A stretch of 64,000 nucleotides of DNA from Macrostomum lignano (GCA_002269645.1 NIVC01000800.1:62001-126000); one strand, 5' to 3'. Shown: positions 6,801 through 64,000, numbered from the stretch's first letter. Numbers and translations: made by a program. The notes: generated by a model from the sequence alone, not told the origin.

Positions 6801-9800
6801 CCAATGAGGGCCAAAGTTAACTGTGTACCACAGATTATCAAATTTTAGAATTTCAACTCAGTCATTCGAATAAAAATTGGAGAGAAATTTGCTTCTCATA
6901 TTCCGTAATAATTGCGTTTGTATTATTATCAACAATTCTTTTAGAACATTTAGAATAGTTTCAAACGCAAACTGTTAACATTGCACCACTTGTGGCACCG
7001 AAATGTATTCAGTTCCAAATATTTATCTGCTAACCTCACCGACTTTTGCACACGCACTTCAGTTGCACCAAGTTTTTGCACATCCGCGACTTGATCAAAT
7101 TTCCAATATGACAAACTGGACACTTTGAATTTTATCCTGAATTAGGAAGAACCCCAGGAATGCCAAATTACCTACAGCTGGCAGTGCTGGGGTGCGTTGC
7201 AGTTATCCCAGTGTAATTTACTAAGATACGAGTAAGTGACGATTCTCAGTGTAGGTTAGTGACGATTCTCAGGGTAAATTATTGACGATTCTCAGGGTAG
7301 ATTATTGACGATTCTCAGGGTAGATTAGTGATGTTTTTCCAAGTAGATTAGTGACGATTATCAGGGTAGATTAGTGACGATTCTTAGGGTAGATTAGTTT
7401 ATATTCTCGAAGTAAATTAGCGACGATTTTCATGCTAGATTAGTAAAGATTCTCATGGTAAATTAGCGATGATTCTCGGGGTAGAATAGTGACGATTATC
7501 AGGGTAGATAAGTGACGATTCTTGGGGCTTACCTGGCTGTTGTCCTGGTTACTCCTGGTCCTAATACATGCAAGGGCTCCACAACAGCCCCCAGCACTGT
7601 CAGTCGCTCAGTTCCGGCAGTGCAGCCACACAGAATTCAAGCAATCCGAAACCGGTTCCCGCCTTCCAGGCAAAGATAGCCAACTGCCAGCCGTGTTTAT
7701 TTCAGGTACGTGCCACCGACAACCCCACAGCCAGCACCGCTGCCACGCAGCGCTACACCGACGTGCCACTGACTGTAACACTCACCGACGTTAACGACAA
7801 TGCACCGACCTTTACTAATCCCACGTTTGAGGTGAGCATATTCGAGAACATTCCAGCTGGCAGCGTGATCATCACACTCACCGCGTCCGATCCGGACTCC
7901 GGAGTCAACGGAATTGTCGGGTTCGCGATTCGCAGCGGAAACGAGCTCGGCTACTTCGGCTTGAACCCCACCACTGGAGCCCTGCGCGTCTCCACCAGTC
8001 TGCTGGGCAAGCCGTCGAGGTCCTACGTGCTCAGCGTCACGGCCACGGACGGTGGTACGCCTCCGCAAAGCACCGAGCACCGGCTGACGGTTACCGTTCG
8101 CTCGGTGTCGGAGACTCGAGGCAACCCGGTGGTCACCTACCCGATCGAGGGACGGAGCTACGCCACGGTGGAGGAGGCGCCCATTGGGACTCCAATACTG
8201 CAGGTGCGTGGGAGTTCGTTCAGCCGATGTAGGGCACCCGATGAAAACGGTACCTAAGTCAAGAAGCGTCCCAGAGTCACTTGCGTCACCCCAGAGTCGT
8301 TGCAGATGACATGGTAAAATTGAAAAGAAGTGAGTCTAGAGGACTCTAAAACGACGAGAAGTCAAGGTACAAGCGCCAAAAAGTCGTTAAAGAGTCGCTC
8401 AAGAATCGCTTTGAAGCGTTTCTCTGGGGTGACGCAAGTGACTCTGGGGCCGTAAAGTCGTATTTGAGGCGTGCTGGAGTCGCTCTCGAGGCACTGAGTT
8501 GCAAGCGTATATTCGAAGCGCTTGATGAATTAGAGTCACATCTCTAGTAAAAGTTAAGCGCCAACACAACGATTCTTTGACGACTCTTTCGCGACTCTTA
8601 CGATTATACAACTCACGTGACGCGTTTGAGACGCAAAAGTCGCCTCTCCGTCGCATTAGACGCGTTTGAGTCGTTATAAGTCTTAAGAGTTGTTCCAGAG
8701 TCGCTAGAGTCACTAGAGAGTTGTTTGCAATGACTCGTGGTTCTTGTCACGATATCATTTTCAACAGGGCAATGGGTTAGTTTGCCATGCCAATGCAGGA
8801 TTTAGTTCATCAATTAGTTTACCAGTTAGTTTTGTTGAATTCGGCTCATCGATAAAATAAAAAAACAAACTTTGAATAATTCTATTCATTTCCGGCAGGT
8901 GACCGCCCGCGACCCGGACTCGAGCGGGAGAACATGACTTTTCTGCTCGGCGGCACGGACGCCTCCAAGTTCGCCATCAACGCCAGCACCGGCTGGATCA
9001 GCAGCCGAGTCCGGCTGGATCGCGAAGCTCAGGCCACCTACCAGCTGGTGGCGTTTGTCCGCGACGGCTCCGGCCTGGAGACCCTCGCCCCGGTGCTGTT
9101 CGCCATCTCGCTGACCGACATCAACGACAATCCGCCAGTGTTTGCCGGCTGCAATCTGCAGGTAGGGCTGCTGCTTGGATCCAGCTTACCGTGGCACTGC
9201 TGAAGGTAGCTTTGGTCTCCAGATTCCTGTCAGTGACATTCGGCACTTTAACCGACGTCCCCATAACCCATCGGGCACATGCATGCACATACCATCGTTG
9301 TGCATTGTGCAGTTTGAAATTTTTCAATTTTCAGTACAACACTCAGCCAGTCCCGGTGGTGGTGCCCGAGAATGTGTACAATCGCGAGATCAACACCTTC
9401 ACCGCCTGCGACCCGGACATCAGCCCCAACAACGGCCTGACCTATCGGATCACCTGCGGCAACGAGGCTGGCTACTTCGCGGTGGGCCGCGACACCGGAG
9501 TGCTCAGCGTTGTGAAGCCCATAGACCGGGAGGCCCGTAGCCAGTACCTGCTGTGCCTGATGGCCAATTCAACCCTGCCCGTGGTGCCGCCAGGCAGCGC
9601 CTCGCCTGCCAACCAGTCCCAGCTGATGGTGCTGGTCAATGTCCAGGACGAGGACGACAATGGCCCTACTGCCGAGTCGGCTGTGCAGATCGCCTATCTG
9701 GCCTCCGATGTCATCTACAATACTCAGGTGGGTTGCATGATTATGGAACTGCAGCTGTAGAAACCTATCATTGATTGGTACTGTATAGAAATAAGTAAAC

Positions 9801-12625
9801 AACTATTTATATTAAAGTTGAAAACAAAAAATACAGCCTTTAGTCTATTTAGACTGTCATTTAATTTCATTTAATTGGTCAGGCCATTTATTTTCAAGTG
9901 ATACAGACGTGAGAGAACCTGATTGGCTGCAAGGAGAGAGGACACAATGTACAGTGGCTGAGAGTACAAATCAAGCGGAACCATGTCTAAACTGTAGATA
10001 ATAGTTTAATATAGCTTAAAACTATAGATTAATAGTCTAAATAATATTATAACACCCCTAAAAAAACTCGGCCAGAGATACGAGCCCTCAGCTGACTGCT
10101 GCGCGTTCGTAGCAACGTTTTTGAGGGGTGTTATCTTATACTTAAGGCACTGAAATGGGGGGGGTTAAGTATAGATAAGACAAAGAAGGGGTGGAGTGCG
10201 CGATGAAAGAAAGAGGCGACATCGAAGAGCCAATCAGAGGGCAGCAGGGGAGAGAGAGAAAATAATAAGACTGAAACTAGACGGAGAGAAAAAAGAGTAA
10301 ACAGAGACAAGTCAAGGTGAACTAAGGTGCTTTACAGTCCATGTGGCATTTATTTTGTACTTTTCAATTCGTGTGATTGTGTCTTCAAATCCAATTTCAT
10401 CTGTACTCAAGAGTCTACGTAAAATTTCATCTCACTGTGGTTCAAATGTACTTTAAAAACGCTAAAAAGGTGTTTAATTTTTTGCTGACTCATTCGCGCG
10501 CAGGTGACCACACTGGCCGTGACGGATCCCGATCTGCCGTCCAACTGGAACCACGTCTACTCTGTGCAGCGAAGCGTGTTCACCTCGGCCGACAGGTCAA
10601 AGGTCAACTCGCCAGCCGACGGCGCATTCCGCGTCGATTCAAGCGCCGGCGTCCTGCGCAGCGGCTTCCTAAACTACGCTTCATACATCGGCGGCACCTT
10701 CGACGTGGACGTGCTGGTCTCCGACAGCCGGTCGCGCACTGCCAGGGTCAACGTCCGGGTCAACATTCTGGGCGAGGAGAATCGACTTCGCTACGTGGTG
10801 TCCATGACCCCGGTGCAGGCCCTGGGCGTGGCTCAGCAGCTCATTGACAATGTCACCGCTATGGTGAGACGCACTTTAGTTTTGAAGATGCTTTAAATTG
10901 AGCTCCTTTATCTGACCATAAGAGTGTTTGACATTCTGGTAAAAGTTGACCTTGTTGAGATACTATTTGACAAATCGGTGAAACACTTCTCAGACGCATT
11001 TGCTGGTTTGGCTTGGCTGGTCAAAAGTGGGCGAATGACGCGAATAGTGATTCTCAAGTTCTGGTAGAATGGGACTTTGCTGTTGCGAGTACTGTGTGGG
11101 AATATAGTTATAGTAGAGCAGTGTTTCACACAGAATATACTCAGCAACATCGAAGTCACCATAACAGAAGATTCCGTCTGTGGACGCCGAGTTGCCGAGT
11201 ATACCGGTATATTCTGTGGTGTTTCAGAAGAATTTCACCGACAATTGGGCGGCATGCGACCAGTACTTCGACTTGGCATTTGACATTGTTTAGCAATTTG
11301 ACGATCATTATTCACATTTTTAATGCAGAACAATCCTTTACTACAAAAAATGCATTGTCTGTAAGATAGTCAAACAGAAAAACAATGCAAAGAATATCGA
11401 CGGCGCCCTCTGATTTTCCCATTAACGCCCTTAAAGCATGGGTATTACTAATTATTGTGCCATAGACATTTGTGTCCTTGACAAAGTGGGACAGAATAAT
11501 CGGGCGTTAAATGTCATTAACTGCCCGTTAGGGGTTAGGTCTCGCTGTCAGTTGATTCTTCTCGTCTGCTGGTTGAGTCGTCTTGTTCAGGGTCTCTACC
11601 TTGCAGACTTTTCAGGCGCGCTAACAGAGTTCTCTTGTTACCATTAGTTGGCTGGCCAGCCGCGGAGAGTTGGGCTTTCAATTCTCGGGCTGTAAGTTTA
11701 GCAAGGCTAGCCATCGCGCAAAAAAAATTGAGCAGGTGTGCGACACCGCGAGCAGAGCACAAGCTGGGGGTTAAAAGCTAGCCGCCCCGCGACAACCCCC
11801 CCCCCCCCCCCCAACGCAGACGCCACCCCGCCACCCCTAACACACTTTGTACGCGGCCTACGGCCGCCCACAAAGCACACCTAATTTCGATATTTCTTTC
11901 CTGCAAGCGGGCTGAAATGTAGTCTATGGCATTAAAAGGCAAGAATAAGTGCCCAGCGGGCACAAAGGTCATGGTAAAATCGCACTGGGACCGCTGATTA
12001 TTTATCCATTGTGGCTCAAAGGCTGCGATTGCTGGTCGAATCTTATGAATATTTAAGTTATAAGCTTTTTTAAGAAAGCTGAAAGGACTAAAAGGACGTC
12101 TCAAGCCCGGGGATTGAGTACGATTTTGCTGAGATCTACTGCGTGTAACCGAATGTACTTTGCTCTTAGCGGGTCTGTACAACTCCGGTGTGCAAGGCGC
12201 AATCATCTCCTCCATCTCCCGCCCTCCCAAAGGTTCGCTCCAGCGGCCTCACCCTGACATTCCAACGGGTATCTCTGCACGCCACCACAGCCTCGGGCGC
12301 CGAGCAGAACACAGCGGACGTGTGCTTCGCCGTGGCCGGCTCCGAGTCCCAGATCCTCACTCTGCGCCAGGCTAAGGCCACCCTTGATAAGGGCGTGAGT
12401 TCGAGTCTGGACTCGCTTTACTCTGAGTTCAAAGTGCAGAGCATCGGGTACTGCAACTCGTACAGCTTGTTCAAGACTTACAACTACCTGGGCATCGAAG
12501 GCTACTGGTGGCTGTTCACGGCGATGTCGGCCATCATCATCCCGTTCGCGTTAGGCCTTGTTGGCTTCATGATGGTCCTGTACAACAAGTATGAGACCAT
12601 GTGCACCGCTCTGCAGTATCAGTGA
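817..12625 (+). CDS. Multi-exon non-classical cadherin with ~14 EC repeats, membrane-adjacent domain and one TM helix; Cad87A/CDH23-like
   Basis: Signal peptide MKPLISVALLLVAAAG. GT-AG exons inferred at 817-1083, 1620-2842, 3275-4936, 5985-6210, 7706-8203, 8899-9161, 9335-9727, 10504-10863 and ~12170-12625. Repeated DxNDNxPxF, LDRE/LDYE and AxDxD motifs; the DAQDTPPVF linker is typical of the CDH23/Cad87A group. TM segment YWWLFTAMSAIIIPFALGLVGFMMVLY. Five 1-nt frameshifts (~3845, ~4612, ~6030, ~6165, ~8925) must be assumed. Confidence 0.88.
1130..1505. repeat. 19-bp minisatellite (CCTGACACCCTGCTAGCGT-like) in cadherin intron 1
   Basis: Tandem copies visible; these account for the repetitive ORFs 1122-1412 and 1202-1429. 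Confidence 0.9.
4990..5905. repeat. GA-rich 10-bp satellite (GAGAGAGTGG/GAGAGAGTGA)n in a cadherin intron
   Basis: Pure tandem array that produces the spurious LSHSL ORFs. Confidence 0.95.
7230..7520. repeat. 23-bp degenerate minisatellite (GTAGATTAGTGACGATTCTCAGG)n
   Basis: About 12 diverged tandem copies. Confidence 0.85.
11535..11880 (-). mobile_element. SAP-domain ORF fragment, probably the 5' end of a retroelement or other TE, in a cadherin intron
   Basis: MASLAKLTARELKAQLSAAGQPTNGNKRTLLARL fits the SAP helix-extended-helix consensus. It is antisense and intronic, truncated after ~60 aa, with a GC-rich leader. Confidence 0.5.
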
Positions 12626-16919: not shown

Positions 16920-19900
16920 TTAGTTCGGCGCCAGGTAGGAATCCATGCCAAGTTTAGACATCGTCGTGTTCGAGGACCTCGGCGGCGGCTGCGGCGGAGG
17001 CCCGGCCTGCTGCGAGCCAGCCGAGCTGTTTTTCCTAGAAAAGCTTCGCGAAATAGGCATCAGTTGCGTTTGCTCGGCCTGAGCTCGCCCGTAGGCTGAG
17101 TTGGCAAAGTTGCCGGTGGTTTGCTGGCTGACATCTAAGTTTGGTTCGTCTTCCACCTCCTCGTAGTAGGTGCTCTCAACTGGCTCGGTGCTGGGCTGCA
17201 TTAATTCCACGGGCTGCGGGCTGGCAAGCAAGTCGAATTGTTTCAGAGGAGAATAGTGCAACTGCAGCACCGCAAGCTGCCATTCCAATTATTATTTTAG
17301 GAGGCTTATGGGCACCCTGGCGCAAGAGCGTTGAGACACCTCTGCCCATTCCGTTGACTCCTGAGCACACACCAGCGCATGGACACTGTACGCAGTCACT
17401 CAATCACATACACGCTCACACAGCGTGTGCAGTGGTCTTGAATTTCTCATTGTCAGGGACAACACACTCTCTGTGCCTTGGGGGTTGGCCCTCGTGGATG
17501 TGAATCGAAACTTTAGGGTCGAGGTTATAGGCTTCATTTATAAAAGAATCGTCATGTCAACCATAAAATATTTATGGGGGATTGCTAAGATGTCAAGGTT
17601 CATGGGGGAGAATTGCTAAGATGTCAAGGCTCATGGTGGAATCGCTAAGATTTCAAAGCTCGTTGGGGGAATGGCTAAAGATGTCAAGGCTCATGGCGGT
17701 CAATCACTGAAACGCTTTGGCTCAAAGCATCTGTTGCTCAGATGCTTTAAGCCAAAGCTCATGGGGGATCTGATATCTTAGGCTATGATATGATAGGTGG
17801 CTTTCATGGCGGATGCTTTTTTGCTTCAAACATAATTTTTCTTAGGATATTAACAATAGCGACTTTTGAGTACAAGGTCGAAACGTACGAGTAATTTATT
17901 CAATAGCTTCTTTTTCTTTATTGTCTCCCAACGGGGGGGGGGCGCAGATGGCTAGTCCAATATACTAAACTCACGAGCTGGGCTGGTAGGCCACCCTGTT
18001 GACGCGCAGCTCCACTCTTGAAGAATGCTTCCGATGATAGACCATGATGCCAGCGACTATGGCGGTCAGGGAGCAGACAACGATCAACAGCACCGCCAGC
18101 AGCAGGATTGGCATCACGAGCTGTTAGTGAAAATCGGATAATTAAGTAGAAAAATTTGAGCGACGAATGAACGACAGACTGTCTGAACGACAGACTGTCT
18201 GAACGACAGACTGTCTGAACGACAGACAGTCTCGCTCTTCTTATGACATTATATAAAATACTTTATCCTCTACGATGTGCTTTTTCAAACTCTAAACTTA
18301 ATTCATTTGAGATTTAATGTTCAAATTTATCGCGGGAGGACTATAAAAGTTTCAACTTCAACAGGAAGTGAACTTCACTTTCTACCCCCACATGGCACTT
18401 TGGGCAGGTTCTGTTCTTGAAAGGGATCTTTTGATCTCGCAGTCCTCATTGTTTCGCAGGCTTCAGTTTATGGTTTGCTAATCAGTTCACAAAAACACCA
18501 AAATTTCACAAACCCGAAATTTAACAAAGTCGAAATATACTCTTAAATTTCAATGCTGTGAAATCTCGGGGTTGTGAAATTTCGGTATTATGCAATAGGT
18601 CGCGTGGATTTTTGAAAATATGAAATTTCAGGTTTGTAAAATTTTGGTGTTGTAAACTTCGGGTTTCTGAAAGCGCCCCGCAAATACATACAGACTTTCT
18701 TGGTTCAAGATACCACGCTAGACCTAAGGGCAGCAAGAACTTACTGTTTCATTCAATGGCTGCGGAGCGTCATGGCTTGCCGTGGTCAGCGCTCGAATTG
18801 CTGTTGGTGCCGGCGGCTGAAACTGGCACACAGCTCCTGAGAAGCCGCTCCTGCAGTCGCATCTGAAGCTGCCCACGGTGTTCACGCAGTCGCCATAGGA
18901 GCCGCAGAGACCTGCCACCAGGCGGCACTCGTCAACATCCTGGTCGCAGTGGTAGCCAGTGAATCCTTTGTCGCAGACGCACACCGATGAGCCGTTGCTG
19001 TTGAAAGTCTGGCAGCTGCCGTTGCGGCACCACGTGGCGTTGCGATGGCACGGGTGAGTCTCCAGCTGACAGTGAGGTCCGGTGAAGTTCATCGGGCACT
19101 GGCAAACCGGCCGTCCTTGCAGGTCCTCCGAGCAGCTGCCTCCGTTCTGGCAGAAGGCCTGTCCCTGCCGCAGACACTTGTGTGACGGAGCGCAGCTGCC
19201 GTTGAGAGCCGTGTAGCCGGTAGGGCAGATCGCAGAGCCGTTGGGGCTGCAGCCGAACCTGGACGGATCGCAGTGCACCGAACAGGCAGCTTGGTAGAAG
19301 TTCGGCCTGCACCCGATCCAGACAGCCAGTTTCAGGATGTGACCATTGCTAGAGATCTCCGTAAGGTGCGATGACCAGCGGCTGTTTGCTGAGTTGTTAG
19401 CAAAAAATGGGAGCTCTGCGGCGTTGTAGGAGCGGTGCAAGCTGCACATGAGCTCATGCTCTCCAGGGTCTTTGTCCTTGACAGTGACCGACACTTGGAC
19501 ATTGTCAGTGGGCTTCAGATCCGATCCGGTGAAGTGAAACTCCAGAGGGTTGATTAGCTGGCCGATGAAATCTCCGAAGTGAATCACTGTCGGGGCATTG
19601 TCGTAGTCAGACGAAACGAAGGTTGCCAGAATTTTCCTTGGCGTCGACACGGAGATGAGAAAGTACGGGTCGCAGTGGTCACTTCCAAAGAAGCTCCGGT
19701 CGCAGCTGCCTCGGTCTCTCTGTCGATACGAGTCGAATTTCACGTATACTGCTCCACTGATCGCTGAGGAATAACTCCTGACTACTCCTTGCAACTAAAA
19801 TAATTTTAATAAGGAAAATTATAGATGACATTTTTACAGTTTGCTGTTTTTGCTGCAATTTTTACAATTATTGCTCCTAAATTTATGCAAATTGAGCTAA

Positions 19901-20791: not shown

Positions 20792-22004
<1,213 letters not shown>

Positions 22005-22304: not shown

Positions 22305-25418
<3,114 letters not shown>

Positions 25419-25686: not shown

Positions 25687-26177
<491 letters not shown>

Positions 26178-26178
<1 letters not shown>

Positions 26179-29161: not shown

Positions 29162-32100
29162 ATGCTGCTGAAGGGCAGAGCTACTGCGGTGAGCATCTTT
29201 TTGCTGCTCGTTTTGCTTCTGGTTGGAACTCGCTGCCAAGCCAGACCAGTGCGAGGACCAGGTGAGTAGCACCTGATGTAGCAAACAGAGTAACAAATAT
29301 TGTGCAAAACATCATAGCAACTACTTGATTGCTTTGCACTTGAAGGACTTCCTTTGAAACCCGCAACTTTACAGAGTCTGAAGAGCACGAGGAATTTTAT
29401 CCAGAAGAGGAAGAAGAGGAGTTTTTTCCCGGTAAAAAAGGAGGAAGTGTCGTTTCAGAAGAATGTGAGTGGTTTTTCGACAGTCCAATAAAAATGAAAA
29501 CGCGTTTAATAACTGCATTCACAACTGCGTAATGCTTGAATCGCTTCAGTGCTGAAAAAGCTCCTGGCCGGCCGAGATGAAGTGTCGCGGTCGTCAAAGG
29601 ACATCCAGAAAGGTAAATCTGTAAAAGAGATTTAGCACATTAAACTATTCAATTATTCTACAAGCTTGGAGCACCATTTTCGATCTGCAGGAAGGCGCAA
29701 ATCCGATGGCAAAAACCCGAAGGTTGTGCCGCCCGCGAGGAAAAAGCGTAAGCCACAAATTCTGCATTTTCACTGTGAAATTCTTAGTAAAATTTGCTTT
29801 GTCTTTCAGTAGAGCGCAAAGTTCACAGCCTACCAAGAATTCACCCAAGCCGGAAAGTGGGCGGAAGCAGGAAGTCTGCGCCACCGGTGAGGAAAGGTAG
29901 GTCAGGAACTTTACCTGCATAATTTGGTTTTGCTCTTCTTGCCGTAAGACACGTTGGCGGAAAGAGTTCCCTACCAAAGAGTGAGTTTCAGATAACATCA
30001 GATAGCAAGCAAACATCAATCCAAATTGGCGGTTTCAGAGAAGAACCAAAAGAATCGTAGAATCGTTTTGGGAGGCTCCGAGAGCTCCCTGCCGCCTCAG
30101 TTTAGAAGTGAGTATCAGCGCCATGACTCACAATGGCGACATTTCTGACACACTAGCATGCAATTCATCAAGAAGTTTGACTGTTTCAGAGAAGAACAAG
30201 AAGAGGATGATTGTAGGCGGCTCCGAGAGCTCCCTGCCGCCTCAGTTTAGAAGTGAGTATCAGCGCCATGACTCACAATGGCGACATTTCTGACACACTA
30301 GCATGCAATTCATCAAGAAGTTTGACTGTTTCAGAGAAGAACAAGAAGAGGATGATTGTAGGCGGCTCCGAGAGCTCCCTGCCGCCTCAGTTTAGAAGTG
30401 AGTATCAGCGCCATGACTCACAATGGCGACATTTCTGACACACTTTAGCATGAAATTGATCAAGAAGTTTGACTGTTTCAGAGAAGAACAAGAAGAGGAT
30501 GATTGTAGGCGGCTCCGAGAGCTCCCTGCCGCCTCAGTTTAGAAGTGAGTATCAGCGCCATGACTCACAATGGCGACATTTCTGACACACTAGCATGCAA
30601 TTCATCAAGAAGTTTGACTGTTTCAGAGAAGAACAAGAAGAGGATGATTGTAGGCGGCTCCGAGAGCTCCCTGCCGCCTCAGTTTAGAAGTGAGTATCAG
30701 CGCCATGACTCACAATGGCGACATTTCTGACACACTAGCATGCAATTCATCAAGAAGTTTGACTGTTTCAGAGAAGAACAAGAAGAGGATGATTGTAGGC
30801 GGCTCCGAGAGCTCCCTGCCGCCTCAGTTTAGAAGTGAGTATCAGCGCCATGACTCACAATGGCGACATTTCTGACACACTAGCATGCAATTCATCAAGA
30901 AGTTTGACTGTTTCAGAGAAGAACAAGAAGAGGATGATTGTAGGCGGCTCCGAGAGCTCCCTGCCGCCTCAGTTTAGAAGTGAGTATCAGCGCCATGACT
31001 CACAATGGCGACATTTCTGACACACTAGCATGCAATTCATCAAGAAGTTTGACTGTTTCAGAGAAGAACAAGAAGAGGATGATTGTAGGCGGCTCCGAGA
31101 GCTCCCTACCGCCTCAGTTCAGAAGTGAGTATCAGCGCCATGACTCACAATGGCGACATTTCTGACACACTAGCATGCAATTCATCAAGAAGTTTGACTG
31201 TTTCAGAGAAGAACAAGAAGAGGATGATTGTAGGCGGCTCCGAGAGCTCCCTGCCGCCTCAGTTTAGAAGTGAGTATCAGCGCCATGACTCACAATGGCG
31301 ACATTTCTGACACACTAGCATGAAATTGATCAAGAAGTTTGACTGTTTCAGAGAAGAACAAGAAGAGGATGATTGTAGGCGGCTCCGAGAGCTCCCTGCC
31401 GCCTCAATTCAGAAGTGAGTATCAGCGCCATGACTAACAATGGCGACATTTCTGACACACTTTAGCATGAAATTGATCAAGAAGTTTGACTGTTTCAGAG
31501 AAGAACAAGAAGAGGATGATTGTAGGCGGCTCTGAGAGCTCCCTGCCGCCTCAATTCAGAAGTGAGTATCAGCGCCATGACTCACAATGGCGACATTTCT
31601 GACACACTAGCATGCAATTCATCAAGAAGTTTGACTGTTTCAGAGAAGAACAAGAAGAGGATGATTGTAGGCGGCTCCGAGAGCTCCCTACCGCCTCAGT
31701 TCAGAAGTGAGTATCAGCGCCATGACTCACAATGGCGACATTTCTGACACACTTTAGCATGAAATTGATCAAGAAGTTTGACTGTTTCAGAGAAGAACAA
31801 GAAGAGGATGATTGTAGGCGGCTCCGAGAGCTTTCTACCGCCTCAGTTTAGAAGTGAGTATCAGCGCCATGACTCACAATGGCGACATTTCTGACACACT
31901 TTAGCATGCAATTGTTCAAGAAGTTTGACTGTTTCAGAGAAGAACAAGAAGAGGATGATTGTAGGCGGCTCCGAGAGCTCCCTGCCGCCTCAGTTCAGAA
32001 GTGAGTATCAGCGCCATGACTCACAATGGCGACATTTCTGACACACTTTAGCATGCAATTCATCAAGAAGTTTGACTGTTTCAGAGAAGAACAAGAAGAG

Positions 32101-35100
32101 GATGATTGTAGGCGGCTCCGAGAGCTCCCTGCCGCCTCAGTTTAGAAGTGAGTATCAGCGCCATGACTTCTAAGCGTTTAAGAGTTACGCACGTTTTTAG
32201 CACACTGGACAGGGATTAAGGTAGTAGGCAGTAGCCAGGTGAGTGCGAAAAAAACTGGGAATCGACAAAAAGGACGCCGTAATCCCAGATGATGTCGAAG
32301 AAAAAAGGCAATATAATTCGTGAAACAAAATATGAAGCAAGGAGCGCTGATAGAGATTCAGTCGTCGAAGCTTGAGGCAGAAGTTTTGCCTTGACCTTAC
32401 ATCTCGAGACTCTGTTGTGCTCCAAAAAGTTTTCTTTGGTTTCTTGAACGGTGCATGAAGCGATTGACTGGGTGAATTGCCATTTTCTGCAATTCATGCA
32501 GCAGTAAACCCTTAAGAGCGTTGAGGACATTTTTATTGATGATGGATCCGTGGTACGTGCGTTTATCTGCTTGAAAACTGGAAAAAGTGATGTATTTTAG
32601 CATCAGTCTCACTTTAAGCAGTCCAAAACAGTAGCCTAAGTTAGTGACTCAAGAAAGGACTCAAGATGGAACTCAGGACTCAAGGAAGGCAAGGCAAGAC
32701 TCTCTAAGACAATGTCGAGAACCCCTGGGAGTGGTGTTGTTCCACAAATTCAACCTGGATGAGATGTCTGGGGGCTTCTTGTCCACTCGTCCGATCAGTG
32801 ATTGATTGGCCTTCGGTCTGGTCCGGAGCTTCACTTCGGGCTCCTTTATGTCGATGAAGTTGACATCCTTTATGATACCATAGCTCGAGAGTCATTATGA
32901 ATCGATCAGCTGATCAATACTGCAGGTTCTGTGTCAGAAGAGGAGCGATCCAGCAAACGCTTCCCTTTGTCCGGATACGCAAAGGCCTCCAAGACTCCCG
33001 GGTCCAGAGGTGACAAGGACAAAGAGTTTAAAAGTGCGTCATAATTTGTCATACCCTGATAATTATTGTAGGACAGAATTTTCGTAGTTGAAAAAACTCT
33101 GAAGAAAAATTCGAAAAAATCGATAAGCGATTTGGAATCAAAGTGACGGGCACCGGGAGCTCCCGACCGCCCCAGAATGGAAGTGAGTTGCGGTGGTCAA
33201 TCTGTCAATCAAAGAAGACATTTCCAGTATCCTTAGGTCTTCAACTGCTCTGCCTCGTACTCCAGTTGATTTAAGATTCGAGTCGAACATTCGGCAGTTT
33301 AACCATTGTTAACTTTCCAAAACCATTGGAAAAGTCTGGCTTGGACGTTAGGAAACAGAAAGTTTTACTGTTTCTTTTAGCGACCCTCGAAAGGAAGGCA
33401 AGAATTTATACCGTGGACGACATAAATACCTGCATAAACGTGGGCCACAAACACCCAGGGTGCGCAGATGTCCTCAGACAGCGAAAAATGTGGTGGCCGC
33501 TTGCACAATCGAATTCAGGGTCCTTAGTCCAAGTCTCAGGTGCTTCGTCTCTTCTAAAACAACCCAAAAAATTAAAATGCATTCAACTTTTCCAAGTGCA
33601 CCCAGCTGACACTGAAACAAATGCAACTAAAACACTGCTACGCTTTAGAGAAGAACAAGAAGATCTCCAAGGCTCCTCAGGTGATCGTGGGCGGCTCTGA
33701 GAGCTCCCTGCCGCCTCAGTTTAGAAGTGAGATCCCTTTAATACTGCATCAGTTGTTATGATTTCAAAGCCAATCAAGAGCATCTGTGAACAAATATGAG
33801 TCCGTTCATTCACTGCAGAGAAGCACCGCAAAGCCAAGAAGTCAGTTCCGAAGCCAGGCTCCTCGAAGGCCTCACTACCTCCCAAGAAACCCAAGAAGAT
33901 TAAGAGTGAGTCTGTTTCTCCATTTTGCCGATTTTAAACCCTTGAATCAAGCAGTGTCTCCTGCGGTTGCAGAAATCGTCAGGCACCTTGGAATCAAAGC
34001 TGCTGAGCGCAAAAGTGAGTCTAAATTCTTCTAATTTTCTTTCGTTTTCCGAAATGATCTCATGTTAGCATGCACAGGCGACGCCCCTTGCGCGTATGCG
34101 CTTGCAGAGCAGTCGAGAGGGGCAGGCAGCAGCAGCCTGAGGGGTCAGCGCAAGCGCTTGCAAGTCAGCGACGAGGCAATCAGTCAGAGTGACCAAGCGG
34201 GTCTGGCCGCTCCACAGTCGCTCGGTCGGCTGGTGCAGCAGGGCCAGGGCCAGAAGGACGGCCTCACCGCGGCCAAGGGCCCGTAGGCAGTCGCCCAGCA
34301 GCATTTGACGATGCCGGCGCAGGGTAGCGCTCACCAGCGCGGGCCATCAGAGCGTTGGTCGACATGCGCTCCAGATAGTGCACTCCAAGCGCGTAACGCA
34401 GCAGCGATCGGTAGAGCGCGTCCAGGGCTCGCGCTCGCATCTGCGTCAGCGGCACAGCCTCCATGCCGTACAGAAGGATCGGCTCTACGACCGCGTGGAA
34501 CAGGCACACCTTCAGGTCGTCTCTGGCAGCTGAAGTGAAGACGTTCATGAAGAAGGGAGCGCGCGTCGCGCCAGGCCTGGTTCCTCCTGTCGGAGACAAT
34601 GGCACCGGGTTTATCACCAGGGTGTCGAGGTACCGGAAGTCCTCGCACGTCGCGGTGCCGTCTCCTTTGGACAGCGTGAGATTTGGGGCGGTATTTGGGC
34701 CCTCGTGCAGCGCCTCCGTCTTGCGAGAATTCACCAGCAGCCCAAGACGGGCGCCCTCGTCGCCGAGTCTTGTGATAGTGCGCTGGGCAGCGGCTGGGTC
34801 GCGACAGAGCAGCGCGATTTCGTCAGCATATGCGAGAGCGGGAAGCAAAAGGAATCGAAGCAAAACGAGAGGGCGTCTGGACCTTCGGTGTAGAATCAGT
34901 AGCTGTCATCCTCGTGGAAGGACTGATGCAGCGCATAAGTCCAAAACTACGAGGAAGCGCAGCAGAACCAGCATGTCGCCCTGAAGGACGCCTGGGCTGA
35001 TGCCGAACTCTTCTTCTGGACCGCCGCCGCTTGACATGACAAAGGCACTGGAGTCAGGATAGAGATCTATCACTGCGTACGCGTAGCAGGTACGCCATAA

Positions 35101-38100
35101 TGAGATAGGAGCCACGCGATAGCTCTGTGGTGGATCCGCCCGGGCAGAAGCCACTTTGGAGGCTCAGCAGCAGTGGGTCGAGGCCGGGTTGGATGCCGTT
35201 GCGCAGAATTGCGTTCAGCAGCTATCTCGGCTGGTGGAGGCGCCTTTCTTTGAGATGGAGACAATATTGGAGGTCCGACATTGCTGAGGAGCTAAGGCGG
35301 CCTCGTTGCCTCCAAGGCTGCAGTGCTTGTTCAGCAGGCTGGTGATGATCGGGGTGAGCTCAGGCAGCTTCAGGACCCTGGGAGGGATGGCGTCCACCCC
35401 AGCGGCGGCATCAGCTCGCATGGTCATCAGTGCTCGGCCAACCTCGCCTGCAGTGGTGGGGCCGGTGTCGAAGGCGCCTGATTGGACTGAAGCGAAGTCT
35501 GGGATCGGCAGGAGAGGCACAGTTGAAGCGGGCGCGTTGAGCACCTCGCGGTAGTGGGTGGCCAGCCGGGCCTTCCGGTGCTCGGTGGAATCAGCACCGA
35601 CGATGGTGTCGGGCTTCGGCTTCCTGCCGGTCAGCTGGTTGATGGCCCTTCTGGAAGCGCTATGGCGGCCGTTGTCAGTGGCGAGTTGGGTTTTGCTCAC
35701 TGCCACTTCGATGAAGACTTCAGTCCGCTGGGCATAGATGCGCTGCAGCTCGTCCGTGGCAGCACTGGCCTGGGCGCTGTCATGGCCGTGGAGGGCAGCA
35801 GTGCTCTCCTTCCCTTGGAGACGATGAGACTGCGGTCCCACAGAGCCTTTGGATGGTTTTCCTGTCTCCGTGGGAGAAGCGCTGCAGCATCCTCGACGGC
35901 GTGATGGAAAGACTCGAAAGACTCGTTCAAAGAAATTTGGAAGCTTTCTGAGGCGCTTTCGCATGGTGCCATTGACAGCCATCAGATCTCTGGCCTAGAA
36001 AAAACTAGATAGGAAAGGTGAGTTGGCATTGGGGATGCCACAGCTGTTCTTCACCAGGCGGCCGTCGGCTGGAAATTGCGAGTTGAAATCCCCTGCACCA
36101 AACTGTCGCCGATGTTCTTGAACTGCCAGGATGGAGACGTTGAGGTCAGCGGCCAGCCTTGTCAGCTCCTGCAGTCTCCATGTCTGACTGAGAGCGCGGG
36201 CATTGAAGGTGGCGACCCGAAGCTGGTCTTGAAGATGCGGCCGACTTGTGCCCTTGTTGGCTCTGCTTGTCACTGATCTCAGCAATGTACAGTGTTGCAT
36301 TTGACTGAAAACACCAATAATTGTACTCCTTGAGGATAACAAGAAGATCTCCAAGGCTCCTCAGGTGGGCGGCTCCGTGAGCTCCCTGGCGCCTCAGTTT
36401 AGAAGTATAAGATCTGTTTAATACTGCATCAGTTGTTGTGATTTCCAAGCCAATCAAGAGCATCTGTAAACAAATATGAGTCCGGTCATTCACTGCAGAG
36501 AAGAAGCGCAAAGTCAAGAAGGCAGTTCCGAAGCCAGACTCCTCGAAGGCCTCACTACCTCCCAAGAAACCCAAGAAGATTAAGAGTGAGTCTGTTTCTC
36601 CATTTTGCCGATTTTAAACCCTTGAATCAAGCAGTGTCTCCTGTGGTTGCAGAAGTCGTCAGGCACCTTGGAATCAAAGCTGCTGGGCAAAGTGAGTTTA
36701 GAGTATTCTAACTACATGTACCTTCGCTGTCACCTTCGATCTCGTAGTAATATTTCTACTTTGTAACAGAGAAGGAATATTGATTAAGGTGTTTGACTGT
36801 TTCAGAGAATAACAAGAAGATCGCCAAGGCTCCTCAGGTGATCGTGGGCGGCTCCGAGAGCTCCCTGGCGCCTCAGTTCAGAAGTGAGATCCCTTTATAA
36901 TATTATATCAATTTTTTATTTCAAAGCCAATCAAGAGCATCTGGGAACAAATACGAGTATGAGTCCGGTCATTCACTGCAGAGAAGAACCGCAAAGCCAA
37001 GAAGTCAGTTCCGAAGCCAGGCTCCTCGAATGCCTCACTACCTCCCAGGAAACCCAAGAAGAATAAAAGTGAGTCTGTTTTCTGTTTTCGTTGGTGTCGA
37101 CGAGAAGCGACGAGACACCCTATGCAGGTCCTTTCCAGGGTCCTTCCCTATGCAGGGCGCCCGACATGAGCCTCGAGTGAAGAGGGGGCCTTCTTATAAT
37201 AAAGTGGCGCCCCTGATGAAAGATTCTGGCTGTGCGCCTTGGCACAAGTCTGACTGCTTCATCATGTTTATTGCCCCTCGATGCATTTTGACCCAAAGGA
37301 GATGTAGCTAGATACTTGAAGTATTAAGAAAAGTTCCAGTGCTGTGTTGATACAAAAGGGAATAATAGTAAATACTTGAGCTAGCTCAATGTAATTTGGC
37401 TATAACTTCTTCATGAAATTACAGAGCAACAAATACTGCTTTCATTTTTGCTGCCTCAACGAACACGGTGCTTTAAGTTGACAAAAACTCTCTCTTTTAT
37501 ACCCACAATCCTCTGGGATTCCAAGGGAGTGACCTTGGATGGGATTCTCTATGTTTGCATCGGTGTCACGTTAAAAGTTCAGAGAACCGCGCCGACTAAG
37601 CTCGGGAGTCGGCCGTCCAAGTGACTTTCGGCCTTCTTAATCCCACTAGTGAAAATCGTCACTTTTATCGGTTTTTTTATTTTTCAGAAAAGCAAAAGAA
37701 GAGGAAAATTTTATTCAGACACGTTCGCACCGGTGGCGATGAAAGCTTGACTTCAACTGGCTCTGGAAGTGAGTGCATGCCATCTATGCTCGTATCCTCC
37801 CACATGCGATCACTCTTTTTCGAAAATTTTATTTTTACGAATCGTTCGGTTTTTTAGCACCTCAAAAAGTAAATATTGGGAAGAAGAAAAGAATTCAAAA
37901 ACGCAAGGCCGGCGGAAGTGGCGTCAAAAAGACCGGCGGAAGTGGCGTCAAAAAGACCGGCGGAAGTGGTGTAAAAAAGGCCGGCGGAAGTGGCGTCAAG
38001 AAGGCCGGCGGAAGTGGCGTCAAGAAGGCCGGCGGAAGTGGCGTCAAAAAGGCCGGCGGAAGTGGCGTCAAAAAGACCGGCGGAAGTGGCGTCAAAAAGA

Positions 38101-38624
38101 CCGACGGAAGTGGCGTCAAGAAGGCCGGCGGAAGTGGCGTCAAAAAGGTTGGTGGAAGTGGCGTCAAAAAGGCCGGCGGAAGTGGCGTCAAAAAGGCCGG
38201 CGGAAGTGGCGTCAAAAAGACCGGCGGAAGTGGCGTCAAAACAGTTGGCGGAAGTGGCGTCAAAAAGGCCGGCGGAAGTGGCGTCAAAACAGTTGGCGGA
38301 AGTGGCGTCAAAAAGGCCGGCGGAAGTGGCGTCAAAACAGTTGGCGGAAGTGGCGTCAAAAAGGCCGGCGGAAGTGGCGTCAAAAAGGCCGGCGGAAGTG
38401 GCGTCAAAAAGGCCGGCGGAAGTGGCGTCAAAAAGGCCGGTGGAAGTGGCGTCAAAAAGGCCGGCGGAAGTGCCGTCAAAAAGGCCGGCGGAAGTGCCGT
38501 AAAAAATTCCAGTGGAAGTGGCGTCAAAAAGGCCGGCGGAAGTGGCGTCAAAAAGGCCGCCGGAAGTGGCGTTAAAACGGCCCCTCTGAAGGGACCCAGC
38601 AAGGGAAAGGCAAACCAGCCTTAA
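29162..38624 (+). CDS. Secreted multi-exon Lys-rich repeat precursor, copy 1: signal peptide, acidic pro-region, xGGS peptide modules, (KKAGGSGV)n tail
   Basis: Exons: 29162-29261 (MLLKGRATAVSIFLLLVLLLVGTRCQARPVRGP), 29375-29464 (acidic), 29550-29612, 29691-29747, 29810-29896, ~29949-29980, 30039-30107, 14 x 63 nt (30190...32147), ~33088-33182, 33649-33726, 33819-33905, 33955-34014, 36499-36585, 36635-36691, 36806-36883, 36982-37068, 37688-37768 and 37858-38624. All internal exons are phase 1/1 with GT-AG; two need a 1-nt correction. Confidence 0.78.
30108..32165 (+). repeat. 145/147-bp tandem intron-exon array (14 exons of 63 nt) within gene copy 1
   Basis: Unit: TTTGACTGTTTCAG | AGAAGAAC...TTTAGAA | GTGAGT. 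The exon reads (K)KNKKRMIVGGSESSLPPQFR. Confidence 0.93.
32170..33045 (-). mobile_element. Possible decayed DNA-transposon-derived insertion in an intron
   Basis: Unique sequence interrupts the exon series. Weak inverted ends (TTACGCACGTTTT / AAAAGTGCGTCA) and broken minus-strand ORF fragments; no family assigned. Confidence 0.25.
34050..36290 (-). mobile_element. Decayed APE-RT non-LTR retrotransposon (RTE-like) with internal deletions, in an intron
   Basis: APE start LRVATFNARAL...ILAVQEHR and AGDFNS. RT motifs GVLQGD, YADEIALL, LVNSRKTE, FRYL and ILLYGME are spread over several frames. Confidence 0.8.
37905..38575 (+). repeat. 24-bp coding repeat (AAAAAGGCCGGCGGAAGTGGCGTC)n encoding (KKAGGSGV)n in the last coding exon of copy 1
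   Basis: About 28 copies. The frame is fixed by the acceptor at 37857 and by the C-terminus LKGPSKGK..QP*, which is shared with copy 2. Confidence 0.88.
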
Positions 38625-38625
38625 G

Positions 38626-38718
38626 GTAGGTAGGCCGAAGGCATTACTTCCAAGGGTGTTGAACGCATTGTAAGCTGAGCAATGGCAAGCTGATCCAATT
38701 CCTAATCTTCTCTTTCAG
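38626..38718 (+). other. 3'-UTR intron starting 1 nt after the stop codon (copy 1)
   Basis: CCTTAAG|GTAGGT...CTAATCTTCTCTTTCAG|GTGCCGAC; the same arrangement occurs in copy 2 (59578-59760). Confidence 0.65.
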
Positions 38719-39043
38719 GTGCCGACTGTCGAAGTCAGAATTGCATTCTGCGAGGCTGATGATCCGAAACATGACCAGACAAAATATATTATTTTTTCTC
38801 GGTCCGGTCAAAGTGAACAAACATTTCCTTTCTCCCCGACAATTCACATCTAGTCGCTTCTATTTTGAAAGTGCTGTCATCCTAACTACCATAACGATGT
38901 TGAGCTGAAGAAAATAAAAGCCAGGATTTAATAATGAATTGTTTTGATTCCTAAACAGGCTGTGGTTATTCAAGCAAGTTTCAAAGAACCTAAATGAATT
39001 ATTTGCGTTATTTCAACTCTGGAAAATAACTCTGAACGATGAA

Positions 39044-42748: not shown

Positions 42749-47613
<4,865 letters not shown>

Positions 47614-49016
47614 TTACCGTCTTATCCCAGGATTGCTCCCAGGCGAGGCTCCGGCAGGCCCCCGGTCCACACTCTGCAAGATCAGGGGGCGGGAGGCCGG
47701 CTGTGGGCTTGGGACACAGGCGCCAGGTCGAGTTGACAGCCGACGCCCGAGCTCTCCCCCACAAGAGCGGCCCTCGAGAACCCGTGTGGTACCAGTTGCA
47801 ACTAAGGGCTGTCGATGGGTAGTTGGCGCTTAGCCAGCAGCCAACTACTTAGCAGCCACCTGCCCCGCAAAAAAGCAGCAGGGGGGATCCGTCCCCCACC
47901 AGCAGACCAAGACGAGGAAGCTAGCCGCTTCCACGCCAGGCCAGAACGAAAAGGAGGGGGAAGAGCCTCCTCGAAAAACGAAAAGCTGGCGGATGTCACA
48001 GAGTCCCTCGGTTTAAGTTGCCGTTTGCCCCCCACCCATGCTGTTAGAGTACGCTAGTCGGTTTGGTGACGATCTGAACGCCGCCGCCACGACGAGTGCG
48101 CTGAACTTGCCTACATTCGGCCGATCCAGCGGTGTCCAATACGAAAACAGTCTTGACGCCACTCTGTTTCCTGTCAACAAACTTGCAGGCAAGCACATTT
48201 CCAGAGCGTGCAATGGCAGAAGAAGTTGGCTGCAGATTTACAGCCTGCAGCAGGTTTGGGATGCCGCGGTTTTTGCGCACTGTGCCAGTGAGAAGAACAT
48301 TCCGTTGCAGCAGCCACGTAGCAAGTCTGTGCGAAGTGAACCAACTGTCTGTGAAAATATGGTAGCCTAGGTAAAGCAAATTGCGGCACAACTCAGCCAC
48401 AACTCTCTCACTCATGGACAAATTTTGACAGCCCAGTCCATCACCGAACAATTGGTTGGCTTCAGTTGATGTATGGATTTCAAAATTCCACAGGTAGGTC
48501 ATGTCGGACTCACAAAGGCAGTACATCTTGATTCCGTACTTACTGCTCTTCGTTGGGATGTACTGCTTGAACAACAGTCTTCCCTTGTACAGCACGAGAC
48601 TTTCGTCAATCGAGAGCCGCTGACGAGGCATAGTTGTTGCTGCACAGCTGCTTAGCCTGTTGCAGAAAAGGCTGCGTCTTAGCCAAGGGACCCCCGTGCA
48701 GAGCCTCAGTGCAATCGTAAAAGCGAAAACAGGACAAGATCTGCTTGAACCTGTCTCTAGGAAGAGAACAAGGCTCAGCAAGAAATGCACAGTGATAAGC
48801 CGGATCTTGCGACCAATAGCTCGATATTTCAGGCTTCTTGTCCAGTCCCATCAGCAAAACAATTCCGATCAATTTTCTTACTTCATTAACCGTGCAGTCC
48901 TTCCAGTTCAGCACAAAATTTGGGACTGCTCCACCGTCAAAGTTATCCTCATAGGTCTTCCAAACCTTTGCGTTTGTCCAGTTCTTGATGTTCTCCATCA
49001 ACCCGTCCGTCAAATA

Positions 49017-49118
49017 CGAGGGCTGAGCAATAAGTTTCCGGATGTGCATAGTTGAGAGGCGGCTGACAAAATCTGACAAAATCAGATTCTGAAATCTGAA
49101 ACTATTGCTCAGCCCTCG
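49017..49118. mobile_element. 102-bp Tc1/mariner-type MITE inserted in the piggyBac transposase gene
   Basis: TA on both flanks; TIR CGAGGGCTGAGCAATA(A)GTTTC. Removing it restores FIKLYLTDGLMENI. Confidence 0.88.
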
Positions 49119-52860: not shown

Positions 52861-52939
52861 AATTACTGGAGAACATTCAGCAGTCTGCAACGCCCCCACA
52901 TATCTCGACTGCTTCTTCCGATGTGATGTAATCTGATGT

Positions 52940-55082
52940 GACTGGCTTTGAATCTAATGAGACTGACTATCAATCTAATGAGACTGGCTATCAATCTAAT
53001 GAGACTGGCTATCAATCTAATGAGACTGGCTATCAATCTAATGAGACTGAGACTGGCTATCAATCTAATGAGACTGGCTATCAATCTAATGAGACTGAGA
53101 CTGGCTATCAATCTAATGAGACTGGCTATCAATCTAATGAGACTGGCTATCAATCTAATGAGACTGGCTATCAATCTAATGAGACTGGCTATCAATCTAA
53201 TGAGACTGGCTATCAATCTAATGAGACTGGCTATCAATCTAATGAGACTGGCTATCAATCTAATGAGACTGGCTATCAATCTAATGAGACTGGCTACCAA
53301 TCTAATGAGACTGGCTATCAATCTAATGAGACTGGCTATCAATCTAATGAGACTGGCTATCAATCTAATGAGACTGGCTATCAATCTAATGAGACTGGCT
53401 ATCAATCTAATGAGACTGGCTATCAATCTAATGAGACTGGCTATCAATCTAATGAGACTGGCTATCAATCTAATGAGACTGGCTATCAATCTAATGAGAC
53501 TGGCTATCAATCTAATGAGACTGGCTATCAATCTAATGAGACTGGCTATCAATCTAATGAGACTGGCTATCAATCTAATGAGACTGGCTATCAATCTAAT
53601 GAGACTGGCTATCAATCTAATGAGACTGGCTATCAATCTAATGAGACTGGCTATCAAACTAATGTAATGAGACTGGCTATCAATCTTATCTAATGAAACT
53701 GGCTATCAAACTAATGTAATGAGACTGGCTATCAATCTTATCTCATGAGACTGGCTATCAATCTAATGAGACTGGCTATCAATCTAATGAGACTGGCTAT
53801 CAATCTAATGAGACTGGCTATCAATCTAATGAGACTGGCTATCAATCTAATGAGACTGGCTATCAATCTAATGAGACTGGCTATCAATCTAATGAGACTG
53901 GCTATCAATCTAATGAGACTGGCTATCAATCTAATGAGACTGGCTATCAATCTAATGAGACTGGCTATCAAACTAATGTAATGAGACTGGCTATCAATCT
54001 TATCTAATGAAACTGGCTATCAAACTAATGTAATGAGACTGGCTATCAATCTTATCTAATGAAACTGGCTATCAAACTAATGTAATGAGACTGGCTATCA
54101 ATCTTATCTCATGAGACTGGCTATCAATCTAATGAGACTGGCTATCAATCTAATGAGACTGGCTATCAATCTAATGAGACTGGCTATCAATCTAATGAGA
54201 CTGGCTATCAATCTAATGAGACTGGCTATGAATCTAATGAGACTGGCTATCAATCTAATGAGACTGGCTATCAATCTAATGAGACTGGCTATCAATCTAA
54301 TGAGACTGACTATCAATCTAATGAGACTGGCTATCAATCTAATGAGACTGGCTATCAATCTAATGAGACTGACTATCAATCTAATGAGACTGGCTATCAA
54401 TCTAATGAGACTGGCTATCAATCTAATGAGACTAGCTATCAATCCTATCTAATGAGACTGGCTATCAATCTTATCTAATGAGACTGGCTATCAATCTTAT
54501 CTAATAAGACTGGCTATCAATCTTATCTAATGAGACTGGCTATCAATCTAATGAGACTGGCTATCAATCTAATGAGACTGGCTATCAATCTTATCTAATG
54601 AGACTGGCTATCAATCTTATCTAATAAGACTGGCTATCAATCTTATCTAATGAGACTGGCTATCAATCTAATGAGACTGGCTATCAATCTAATGAGACTG
54701 GCTATCAATCTTATCTAATGAGACTGGCTATCAATCTTATCTAATGAGACTGGCTATCAATCTTATGTAATGAGACTGGCTATCAATCTAATGAGACTGG
54801 CTATCAATCTAATGAGACTGGCTATCAATCTAATGAGACTGAGACTGGCTATCAATCTAATGAGACTGGCTATCAATCTAATGAGACTGGCTATCAATCT
54901 AATGAGACTGGCTATCAATCTAATGAGACTGGCTATCAATCTAATGAGACTGGCTATCAATCTAATGAGACTGGCTATCAATCTAATGAGACTGGCTATC
55001 AATCTAATGAGACTGGCTATCAATCTAATGAGACTGGCTATCAATCTAATGAGACTGGCTATCAATCTAATGAGACTGGCTA
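52940..55082. repeat. 21-bp minisatellite (GAGACTGGCTATCAATCTAAT)n
   Basis: About 100 copies, with occasional 26/27-bp variants; source of the SNETGYQ/LIASLIR ORFs. Confidence 0.97.
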
Positions 55083-55189
55083 TTCGAATAATTATCGAGC
55101 GCAACTCGTCTGGCCCTGCCAGTTGGTGGGCACGCATGTCGTAGTGCACAGTGGGCAGCACAGGGATTGGCTCCAGGGTCAGGTCCACT

Positions 55190-63919: not shown

Positions 63920-64000
63920 GAGACTGGCTATGAATCTAATGAGACTGGCTATCAATCTAATGAGACTGGCTATCAATCTAATGAGACTGGCTATCAATCT
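63920..64000. repeat. Second locus of the 21-bp minisatellite, in an SDHA intron, cut by the window end
   Basis: Same unit as 52940-55082, including the rare CTATGAATCT variant. Confidence 0.93.

Follow-up and report, generated by a model that had tools for sequence, protein, structure and literature searches.

We analyzed a 64,000-nt stretch of the Macrostomum lignano genome (GCA_002269645.1, NIVC01000800.1:62001-126000; hereafter the window, with positions counted from its first letter) that contains two tandem arrays of a short repeat. Judged from sequence, each 145-147-bp unit is a 63-nt phase-1 coding exon followed by an 82-84-nt GT-AG intron, and the arrays form the middle of two paralogous genes arranged in tandem on the + strand. 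We consider it very likely, on the whole, that these genes encode secreted-type, lysine-rich repeat precursors with coding arrays that evolve in concert and a peptide core under selection, with a polyprotein as the form of the product that we tentatively prefer. Tandem Repeats Finder reported two arrays, one with a period of 145 bp at 30074-32168 (14.4 copies) and the other with a period of 147 bp at 55980-59434 (23.7 copies), from which 37 canonical units (14 and 23, respectively) were extracted for alignment. Each unit has the order tttcag, 63 nt, GTGAGT, after which come 82-84 nt. Array 1 (30190-32147, + strand) thus reads as 14 exons of 63 nt (KKNKKRMIVGGSESSLPPQFR) with GT-AG introns of 82-84 nt between them, and array 2 (56039-59312, + strand) as 23 exons, 22 of 63 nt and one of 60 nt (57214-57273), with introns of 81-84 nt. 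The acceptor GTTTGACTGTTTCAG and the donor GTGAGTATCAG are identical in all 37 units; the canonical introns have a polypyrimidine tract and are compatible in phase, all internal exons being of the 1-1 class. Each 63-nt exon yields one 21-amino-acid module, KKNKKR-MIVGGSESSLPPQFR. Outside this set we found one diverged 69-nt unit (30039-30107) and one unit-like start of a terminal exon (59395).

The reading frame of the units is fixed independently of the arrays. Gene 1 (29162-38624) gives a spliced model of 29 exons and 897 amino acids, and gene 2 (55349-59576) one of 27 exons and 634 amino acids, neither with an internal stop. Both begin with an ATG and a signal-peptide exon, continue through an acidic exon into the arrays, and end with a basic terminal exon carrying TAA; the frame is open from ATG to TAA over the splice junctions, and none of the 37 units contains a stop in it. 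By inspection, both signal peptides show a basic n-region and a hydrophobic core of ~14 residues, and the predicted cleavage site is preceded by C-Q-A. With an exon 1 of 100 nt and later exons whose lengths are all divisible by three, phase 1 holds at every junction, and this is the phase in which the 63-nt exon encodes the module; the upstream exons therefore set the frame on their own. This bears out the frame proposed in an earlier note on this DNA, and the UniProt entry P0009 (A0A1I8JLP8) agrees with it, being identical, residue for residue (100%), to the splice model of gene 1 exons 1-7. The same phase symmetry means that any subset of exons could be skipped in frame. A search of about 5.8 billion proteins matched Macrostomum lignano UniProt entries only. 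Four of these (P0001, P0008, P0009, and P0010) fit the gene 1 model: P0009 and P0001 reproduce the splicing of exons 1-5, the 69-nt module and the first 63-nt module, while P0008 skips the 69-nt module in frame, so that P0008 vs. P0009 hints at exon skipping. Public databases contain the gene only as uncharacterized fragments, and literature searches for the peptide strings and for calpastatin together with Macrostomum returned no paper on it. Pfam scans gave no robust domain in either product. Although the string R↓IVGG (the arrow marks a cut) recalls the activation site of serine proteases, there was no Trypsin-family match in Pfam scans at E ≤ 10, and we rejected that candidate. Antisense coding was rejected as well, as the sole open frame of the minus strand acquires TAG in the nine units that carry CTA.

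Variation within the arrays is of the kind expected of coding exons. The earlier note had described the exon differences as nearly all synonymous, and the full 37-unit alignment shows five synonymous third-position transitions: C>T at exon position 35 (TCC/TCT, 1 unit), G>A at position 47 (CTG/CTA, 9 units), G>A at position 50 (CCG/CCA, 1 unit), G>A at position 56 (CAG/CAA, 2 units) and T>C at position 59 (TTT/TTC, 9 units). The single replacement reported for the unit at 31791 is a CC>TT change at positions 43-44 (Ser>Phe), and the codon deletion reported for the unit at 57214 is a 3-nt in-frame deletion that removes a Lys codon. As had also been stated, every 1-2-nt indel falls in the intron, and the two other frames are stopped (TGA in 37/37 units, TAG in 29/37). 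All that the earlier note stated about the variants is thus correct. Exon variants are biased to codon position 3, with no frameshifting exon indel in the alignment. The intron has eight substitution sites (two transitions, six transversions) and three indel sites (a TT indel and two 1-nt deletions), none of them within its first 16 or last 17 bases, as splice signals would require. When all single-base changes of the consensus exon were enumerated in frame, 21% of them were synonymous overall and 33% of the transitions; the probability of at least five synonymous events in six is then 0.002 at equal rates and 0.018 with transitions only, and that of at least six of seven changed bases falling at codon position 3 is 0.007. 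The exon changes are all transitions vs. six transversions among eight substitution sites in the intron (Fisher test by hand, p about 0.006-0.009). Within the arrays, selection is visible in the kind of change and not in its number, a signal that is real but rests on six events. Silent-only exon variation is moreover an ordinary signature, expected of any functional coding exon that is kept uniform by gene conversion and selection.

The earlier suggestion of purifying selection on the peptide is supported mainly by diverged modules of gene 1, the within-array evidence alone being modest. Three such modules were compared with the canonical one over a core of 14 codons (IVGGSESSLPPQFR): the 69-nt first module at 30039 (KNQKNRRIVLGGSESSLPPQFR; present in P0001 and P0009 and skipped in P0008), exon A1 (33649-33726, KNKKISKAPQVIVGGSESSLPPQFR) and exon A3 (36806-36883, NNKKIAKAPQVIVGGSESSLAPQFR), the gene 1 exons between 33.6 and 37.1 kb having been located with the UniProt entries P0003 and P0004. 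All three retain IVGGSESSL[P/A]PQFR. Each comparison gave three synonymous changes and 0-1 non-synonymous, with a synonymous divergence (dS) of about 0.34 and a non-synonymous divergence (dN) of 0-0.03; the Ile-Val pair is spelled in three ways among modules (ATT GTA, ATC GTG, and ATC GTT). The introns beside these modules show no alignable similarity to the canonical intron, the exception being the final 15 nt (gtttgactgtttcag) upstream of 36806. The three B exons of the same gene, B1 (33819-33905, KHRKAKKSVPKPGSSKASLPPKKPKKIK), B2 (36499-36585) and B3 (36982-37068), show non-synonymous to synonymous ratios of 5:0, 4:1, and 7:1, with dN ≥ dS. Since dN is near zero in the core while the B exons change mostly non-synonymously, the constraint is specific to the A-module core, and purifying selection acts on these 14 amino acids at the level of the protein.

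Selection does not account for the uniformity of the arrays as a whole. When units are compared over their full length with the intron, identity is 97.0% between arrays vs. 97.3 and 97.1% within them; likeness ranges from 97 to 100%, and one unit type is identical in both arrays. The identity of gene 1 to gene 2 is 90% in exon 1, 85% in intron 1, 82% in exon 2, 70% in intron 2, and 74% in exon 3. Six variant sites are common to both arrays, and all four haplotypes are present for exon positions 47 and 59, a pair separated by 12 nt. We conclude from these patterns that the arrays are homogenized by unequal crossing-over or gene conversion, both within and between loci 24 kb apart, and that concerted evolution between paralogues, rather than selection, explains why the units are nearly identical even in their introns. 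The identity of the introns reflects recency and not function. The repeat intron has a minimum free energy of -16.1 kcal/mol, a fold no better than that of shuffled sequences (z = -0.21), and gave no Rfam match at the gathering or E ≤ 1 level.

What the product does is less certain than that it is encoded. The predicted mature proteins contain no Cys and no Trp, are 18-21% Lys and rich in Gly, Ser, and Pro, and have isoelectric points of 11.7 (gene 1) and 11.2 (gene 2) with net charges of +203 and +113. The interpretation that we prefer, if tentatively, is that of a polyprotein precursor cut at its polybasic linkers. Convertase-type cleavage at these linkers (KKR↓M, F-RKK) would release about 38 copies of MIVGGSESSLPPQF; the KKR↓M site would offer Arg at P1 and basic residues at P2 and P6, with F-RKK downstream, the number of copies would be a matter of dosage, and exon skipping would stay in frame owing to the phase-symmetric exons. 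An acidic pro-region follows the signal peptide, the core peptide is kept exactly, and canonical, first, and A-type modules alike have KR↓M, RR↓I or KK↓I on the upstream side of it and F-R-K on the downstream side, all of which favor this view. A number of observations weigh against it, or against the wider picture to which it belongs. The peptide lacks a C-terminal Gly that could be amidated, A-type modules (KK-ISKAPQV-IVGG) do not conserve the N-terminal cleavage site, prohormones are not usually laid out as one peptide per exon, and the B exons and the (KAGGSGVK)28 tail of gene 1 look like bulk low-complexity material instead of a prohormone. The density of exon substitutions (7/63) is not below that of the intron (8/82; Fisher p = 0.79), the within-array signal of selection amounts to the six events above, and the M. 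lignano UniProt fragments are gene predictions that end after two modules. Equally plausible in our judgment is a product secreted intact, that is, an uncleaved, polycationic, disordered scaffold of structural or adhesive type that shows the motif many times and whose repeats act in bulk by charge, binding polyanions, glycocalyx or substrate. The composition given above (high isoelectric point and Lys content, abundance of Gly, Ser, and Pro, absence of Cys) would suit such a scaffold, as would the (KAGGSGVK)28 tail and B exons that keep composition but not sequence; structural silk genes show concerted exon-intron modules (PMC3563967), and KR/GRK-rich secreted adhesive proteins occur in M. lignano, Minona, and Theama (PMC6745481, PMC9229212). 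However, a function exerted in bulk through physico-chemical properties does not call for the exact conservation of sequence seen in the A-module core (dN about 0). We regard as scarcely credible the notion that the repeat is a non-coding satellite, or an intronic array hosting small RNAs, with incidental splice signals and open frame. Its introns are indeed as uniform as its exons, and a unit length of 145-147 bp is satellite-like, but the frame is uninterrupted in 37/37 units and, in two genes, connects ATG/signal-peptide exons to a stop, variation is biased to third codon positions, proteins match in databases, and the antisense frame is broken in nine units; the Rfam and folding results for the intron speak against a small-RNA host.

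The last alternative to be weighed arises from the core itself, in which the module would be a protease-binding motif like subdomain B of calpastatin (hydrophobic-G-x4-[ST]-[IL]-P-P-x-[YF]-R). We think this very improbable, and give as little credence to its corollary, that the secreted product would act as a many-headed inhibitor or decoy against a calpain-like cysteine protease. Two matches to Pfam PF00748 (Calpain_inhib; gathering score 22) scored 27.6 bits (E = 4.5e-6) and 23.2 bits, and hhalign placed VGGSESSLPPQFRK ungapped over 14 columns with LGIKEGTIPPEYRK (3DF0_C) and LGERDDTIPPEYRH (3BOW_C) at a probability of 84-90%. The aligned residues span the published hot spots of calpastatin, Leu-Gly and Thr-Ile-Pro, with the same four-residue spacer (PMC4057710). 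The likeness to subdomain B is thus a 13-14-residue pattern with the same spacing, but one that shuffled controls place near the level of chance: two of 30 shuffled tripled modules reached at least 23.2 bits on other Pfam families (31.1 and 25.0), and three of 30 passed some family's gathering score, for an empirical p of about 0.07-0.1. Furthermore, the matches cover only positions 73-121 and 97-121 of the 130 in the profile, with no subdomain A or C; the repeat period is 21 amino acids vs. about 140 for a calpastatin inhibitory domain; both genes have a signal peptide and their product is predicted to be secreted, whereas calpastatin and calpains are cytosolic; and searches of PDB chains with the repeat and with the repeat profile did not return calpastatin. 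Calpastatin is not known from flatworms. The shuffled controls, the lack of subdomains A and C, and the signal peptide are the reasons why we keep this explanation only as a low-probability lead. If it were true, a V-G, four-residue loop, S-L-P-P-x-F-R motif would be shown ~38 times on a secreted polycation, flatworms would own an extracellular, many-headed inhibitor or decoy of cysteine proteases assembled by exon amplification, and a 21-amino-acid repeat found in Symbiodinium, MVIGGDESSLPPEYR, would reflect an ancient or convergent motif. That repeat belongs to the one non-flatworm match of an exhaustive phmmer search, a Symbiodinium natans protein (P0005/P0006, at 2603-3538 of the Symbiodinium-type contig L001; E = 4.4e-6), which is a dinoflagellate membrane protein ending in three 21-amino-acid repeats, M[VS][IV]G[GD]D[ED]SSLPPEYRHG (period counted by hand). 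Nine of 15 core residues are identical to the flatworm module, and Calpain_inhib matches it with 20.1 bits. Recent transfer between flatworm and Symbiodinium was rejected, given that the Symbiodinium repeats lie in one contiguous open reading frame and, over the core, share only 62-67% identity with the flatworm exon at the DNA level. Chance or convergence would be a sufficient explanation of the resemblance, with repeat-on-repeat scoring inflating the E-value. A profile search with the alignment labeled A2 produced no scoring match.

Precursors that carry many copies of a peptide include FMRFamide-type neuropeptide precursors, yeast alpha-factor, Ustilago Rep1, the diatom silaffin Sil1p, and nematode polyprotein allergens. 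The genes described here share with them a signal peptide, an acidic pro-region and many identical copies between di- or polybasic sites. Such precursors normally have their copies in a single exon or a few, whereas here there is one per exon; the present genes also differ in having no amidation Gly, unusually long and basic linkers (RKKNKKR) and an extra low-complexity basic tail, and their processing is predicted. The nearest described architecture is that of the spider silk genes Nephila Flag and Argiope MaSp2, iterated exon-intron modules with introns nearly identical within a gene (PMC3563967, citing Hayashi & Lewis 2000). Common to both systems are tandem units of exon plus intron in one gene, introns that evolve in concert and a repetitive secreted product (PMC3563967). 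Silk units are of kilobase scale and encode Gly/Pro-rich structural motifs, in contrast to the 145-147-bp unit here, with its 63-nt exon and specific basic peptide of 21 amino acids, and homogenization here spans two paralogous genes 24 kb apart, unlike in silk genes. In flatworms, the KR/GRK-rich adhesion proteins, namely Mile-ap3, Tmed-ap3, and the flanks of Mlig-ap1 (PMC6745481, PMC9229212), are likewise secreted and lysine-rich, with low-complexity repeats that short-read assemblies break, a likeness drawn by composition only. They differ in being thousands of residues long, in having GRK units or vWD/EGF cores, and in being expressed in adhesive glands.

The remaining parts of gene 1 (+ strand unless stated) suggest that modules have been gained and lost. 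Exon 1 (29162-29261) holds the ATG and signal peptide (MLLKGRATAVSIFLLLVLLLVGTRCQA↓RP) and is identical to P0009; exons 2-5 lie at 29375-29464 (the acidic exon), 29550-29612, 29691-29747, and 29810-29896, all of phase 1-1, and exons 4 and 5 (VVPPARKK; KVGGSRKSAPPVRK) look like decayed modules. Between exon 5 and the first repeat exon, a 32-nt candidate exon at 29949-29980 (GGCGGAAAGAGTTCCCTACCAAAGA, followed by GTGAGT) was rejected despite its donor, as it breaks the phase and is missing from P0001 and P0009; it is probably a decayed module. Downstream of array 1, where the A, B, and C exons are all of phase 1-1 and the A type has the consensus KNKKI[S/A]KAPQVIVGGSESSL[P/A]PQFR, the C exons C1 (33973-34014, IVRHLGIKAAERK; with A1 and B1 a diverged triplet at 33649-34014) and C2 (36653-36691) complete the set together with A2 (36335-36404). 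A2 has lost its acceptor (ttg), has the donor GTATAA, a 6-nt deletion and a Glu>Val change, and is skipped in P0003 and P0004, so that it is probably a dead exon. It adjoins a retrotransposon fragment on the - strand (34100-36300, boundaries approximate; weak RVT_1 match) that is inserted in a gene 1 intron. The decayed 29949-29980 sequence and the dead A2 exon together suggest birth-and-death turnover of modules. The gene closes with a penultimate exon (37688-37768, KQKKRKILFRHVRTGGDESLTSTGSG) and a terminal exon (37858-38624) with TAA at 38622-38624 and a 3′ untranslated region (3′-UTR) intron directly after it. A 24-nt minisatellite in the terminal exon (37905-38582) is coding, giving (KAGGSGVK)x28 without a frameshift.

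In gene 2 (+ strand), exon 1 (55349-55448) encodes the signal peptide MPLKGRAAAVSSLLLLVLLLVGTRCQA↓RP, exon 2 (55579-55701) is acidic, and exon 3 lies at 55796-55849, their identities to gene 1 being those given above. The terminal exon (59395-59576) has a module-like start (KNKKRMIVGGSE...), a basic tail with one KAGGNGEK (59472-59495), and TAA; the single KAGGNGEK vs. 28 copies in gene 1 implies that the tail grew in one gene only. In both paralogues (38621-38740; 59573-59800), the stop stands directly before a conserved intron, with TAAG followed by GTAGGTAGG and, at the other end, ttcag followed by GTGCCGAC, after which comes a conserved 3′-UTR exon. An intron right after the stop could expose both mRNAs to the rules of nonsense-mediated decay. 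A 21-nt minisatellite (AATCTAATGAGACTGGCTATC, 97 copies) occupies 52930-55083, ~270 bp upstream of gene 2, and restarts at 63920-64000; its restart at the end of the window may signal a third gene copy beyond 64 kb.

Other features of the window are a multi-exon cadherin-repeat gene at 1575-12625 (+ strand; Pfam Cadherin, 4.6e-18), with a (GAGAGTGAGA)x92 array between its exons (4993-5918), a large exon with EGF and calcium-binding EGF repeats at 18724-19794 (- strand) from a Notch-ligand-like or EGF-repeat protein, and a succinate dehydrogenase flavoprotein exon (FAD_binding_2 and Succ_DH_flav_C) at 63345-63869 (- strand). Between genes 1 and 2, on the - strand, are a retrotransposon without long terminal repeats (42749-47589; RVT_1 at 1e-30, RNase H and an upstream gag-like open reading frame) and a piggyBac-type transposase remnant (48044-49079; DDE_Tnp_1_7, 1.4e-30). 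Micro- and minisatellites are unusually abundant in this region and include very long simple repeats, (GACA)x303 at 20792-22004, a 19-mer x75 at 23655-25080, and (ATCT)x123 at 25687-26178.

The locus is therefore a gene and not a satellite, and its reading frame and full predicted exon structure are fixed by the models given here. The complete 29- and 27-exon models are new annotation, the public protein entries being two-module fragments. They present a compact case of exon-intron modules amplified to 15 and 23 copies and homogenized over two paralogues, a locus suited to the study of the interplay between concerted evolution and purifying selection. How the spliceosome copes with dozens of identical splice sites at a spacing of 145 bp is a further question that they pose. 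Should the product be a peptide polyprotein or a gland-secreted polycation, the genes would be candidates for RNA interference and in situ work in a flatworm that is tractable in the laboratory.

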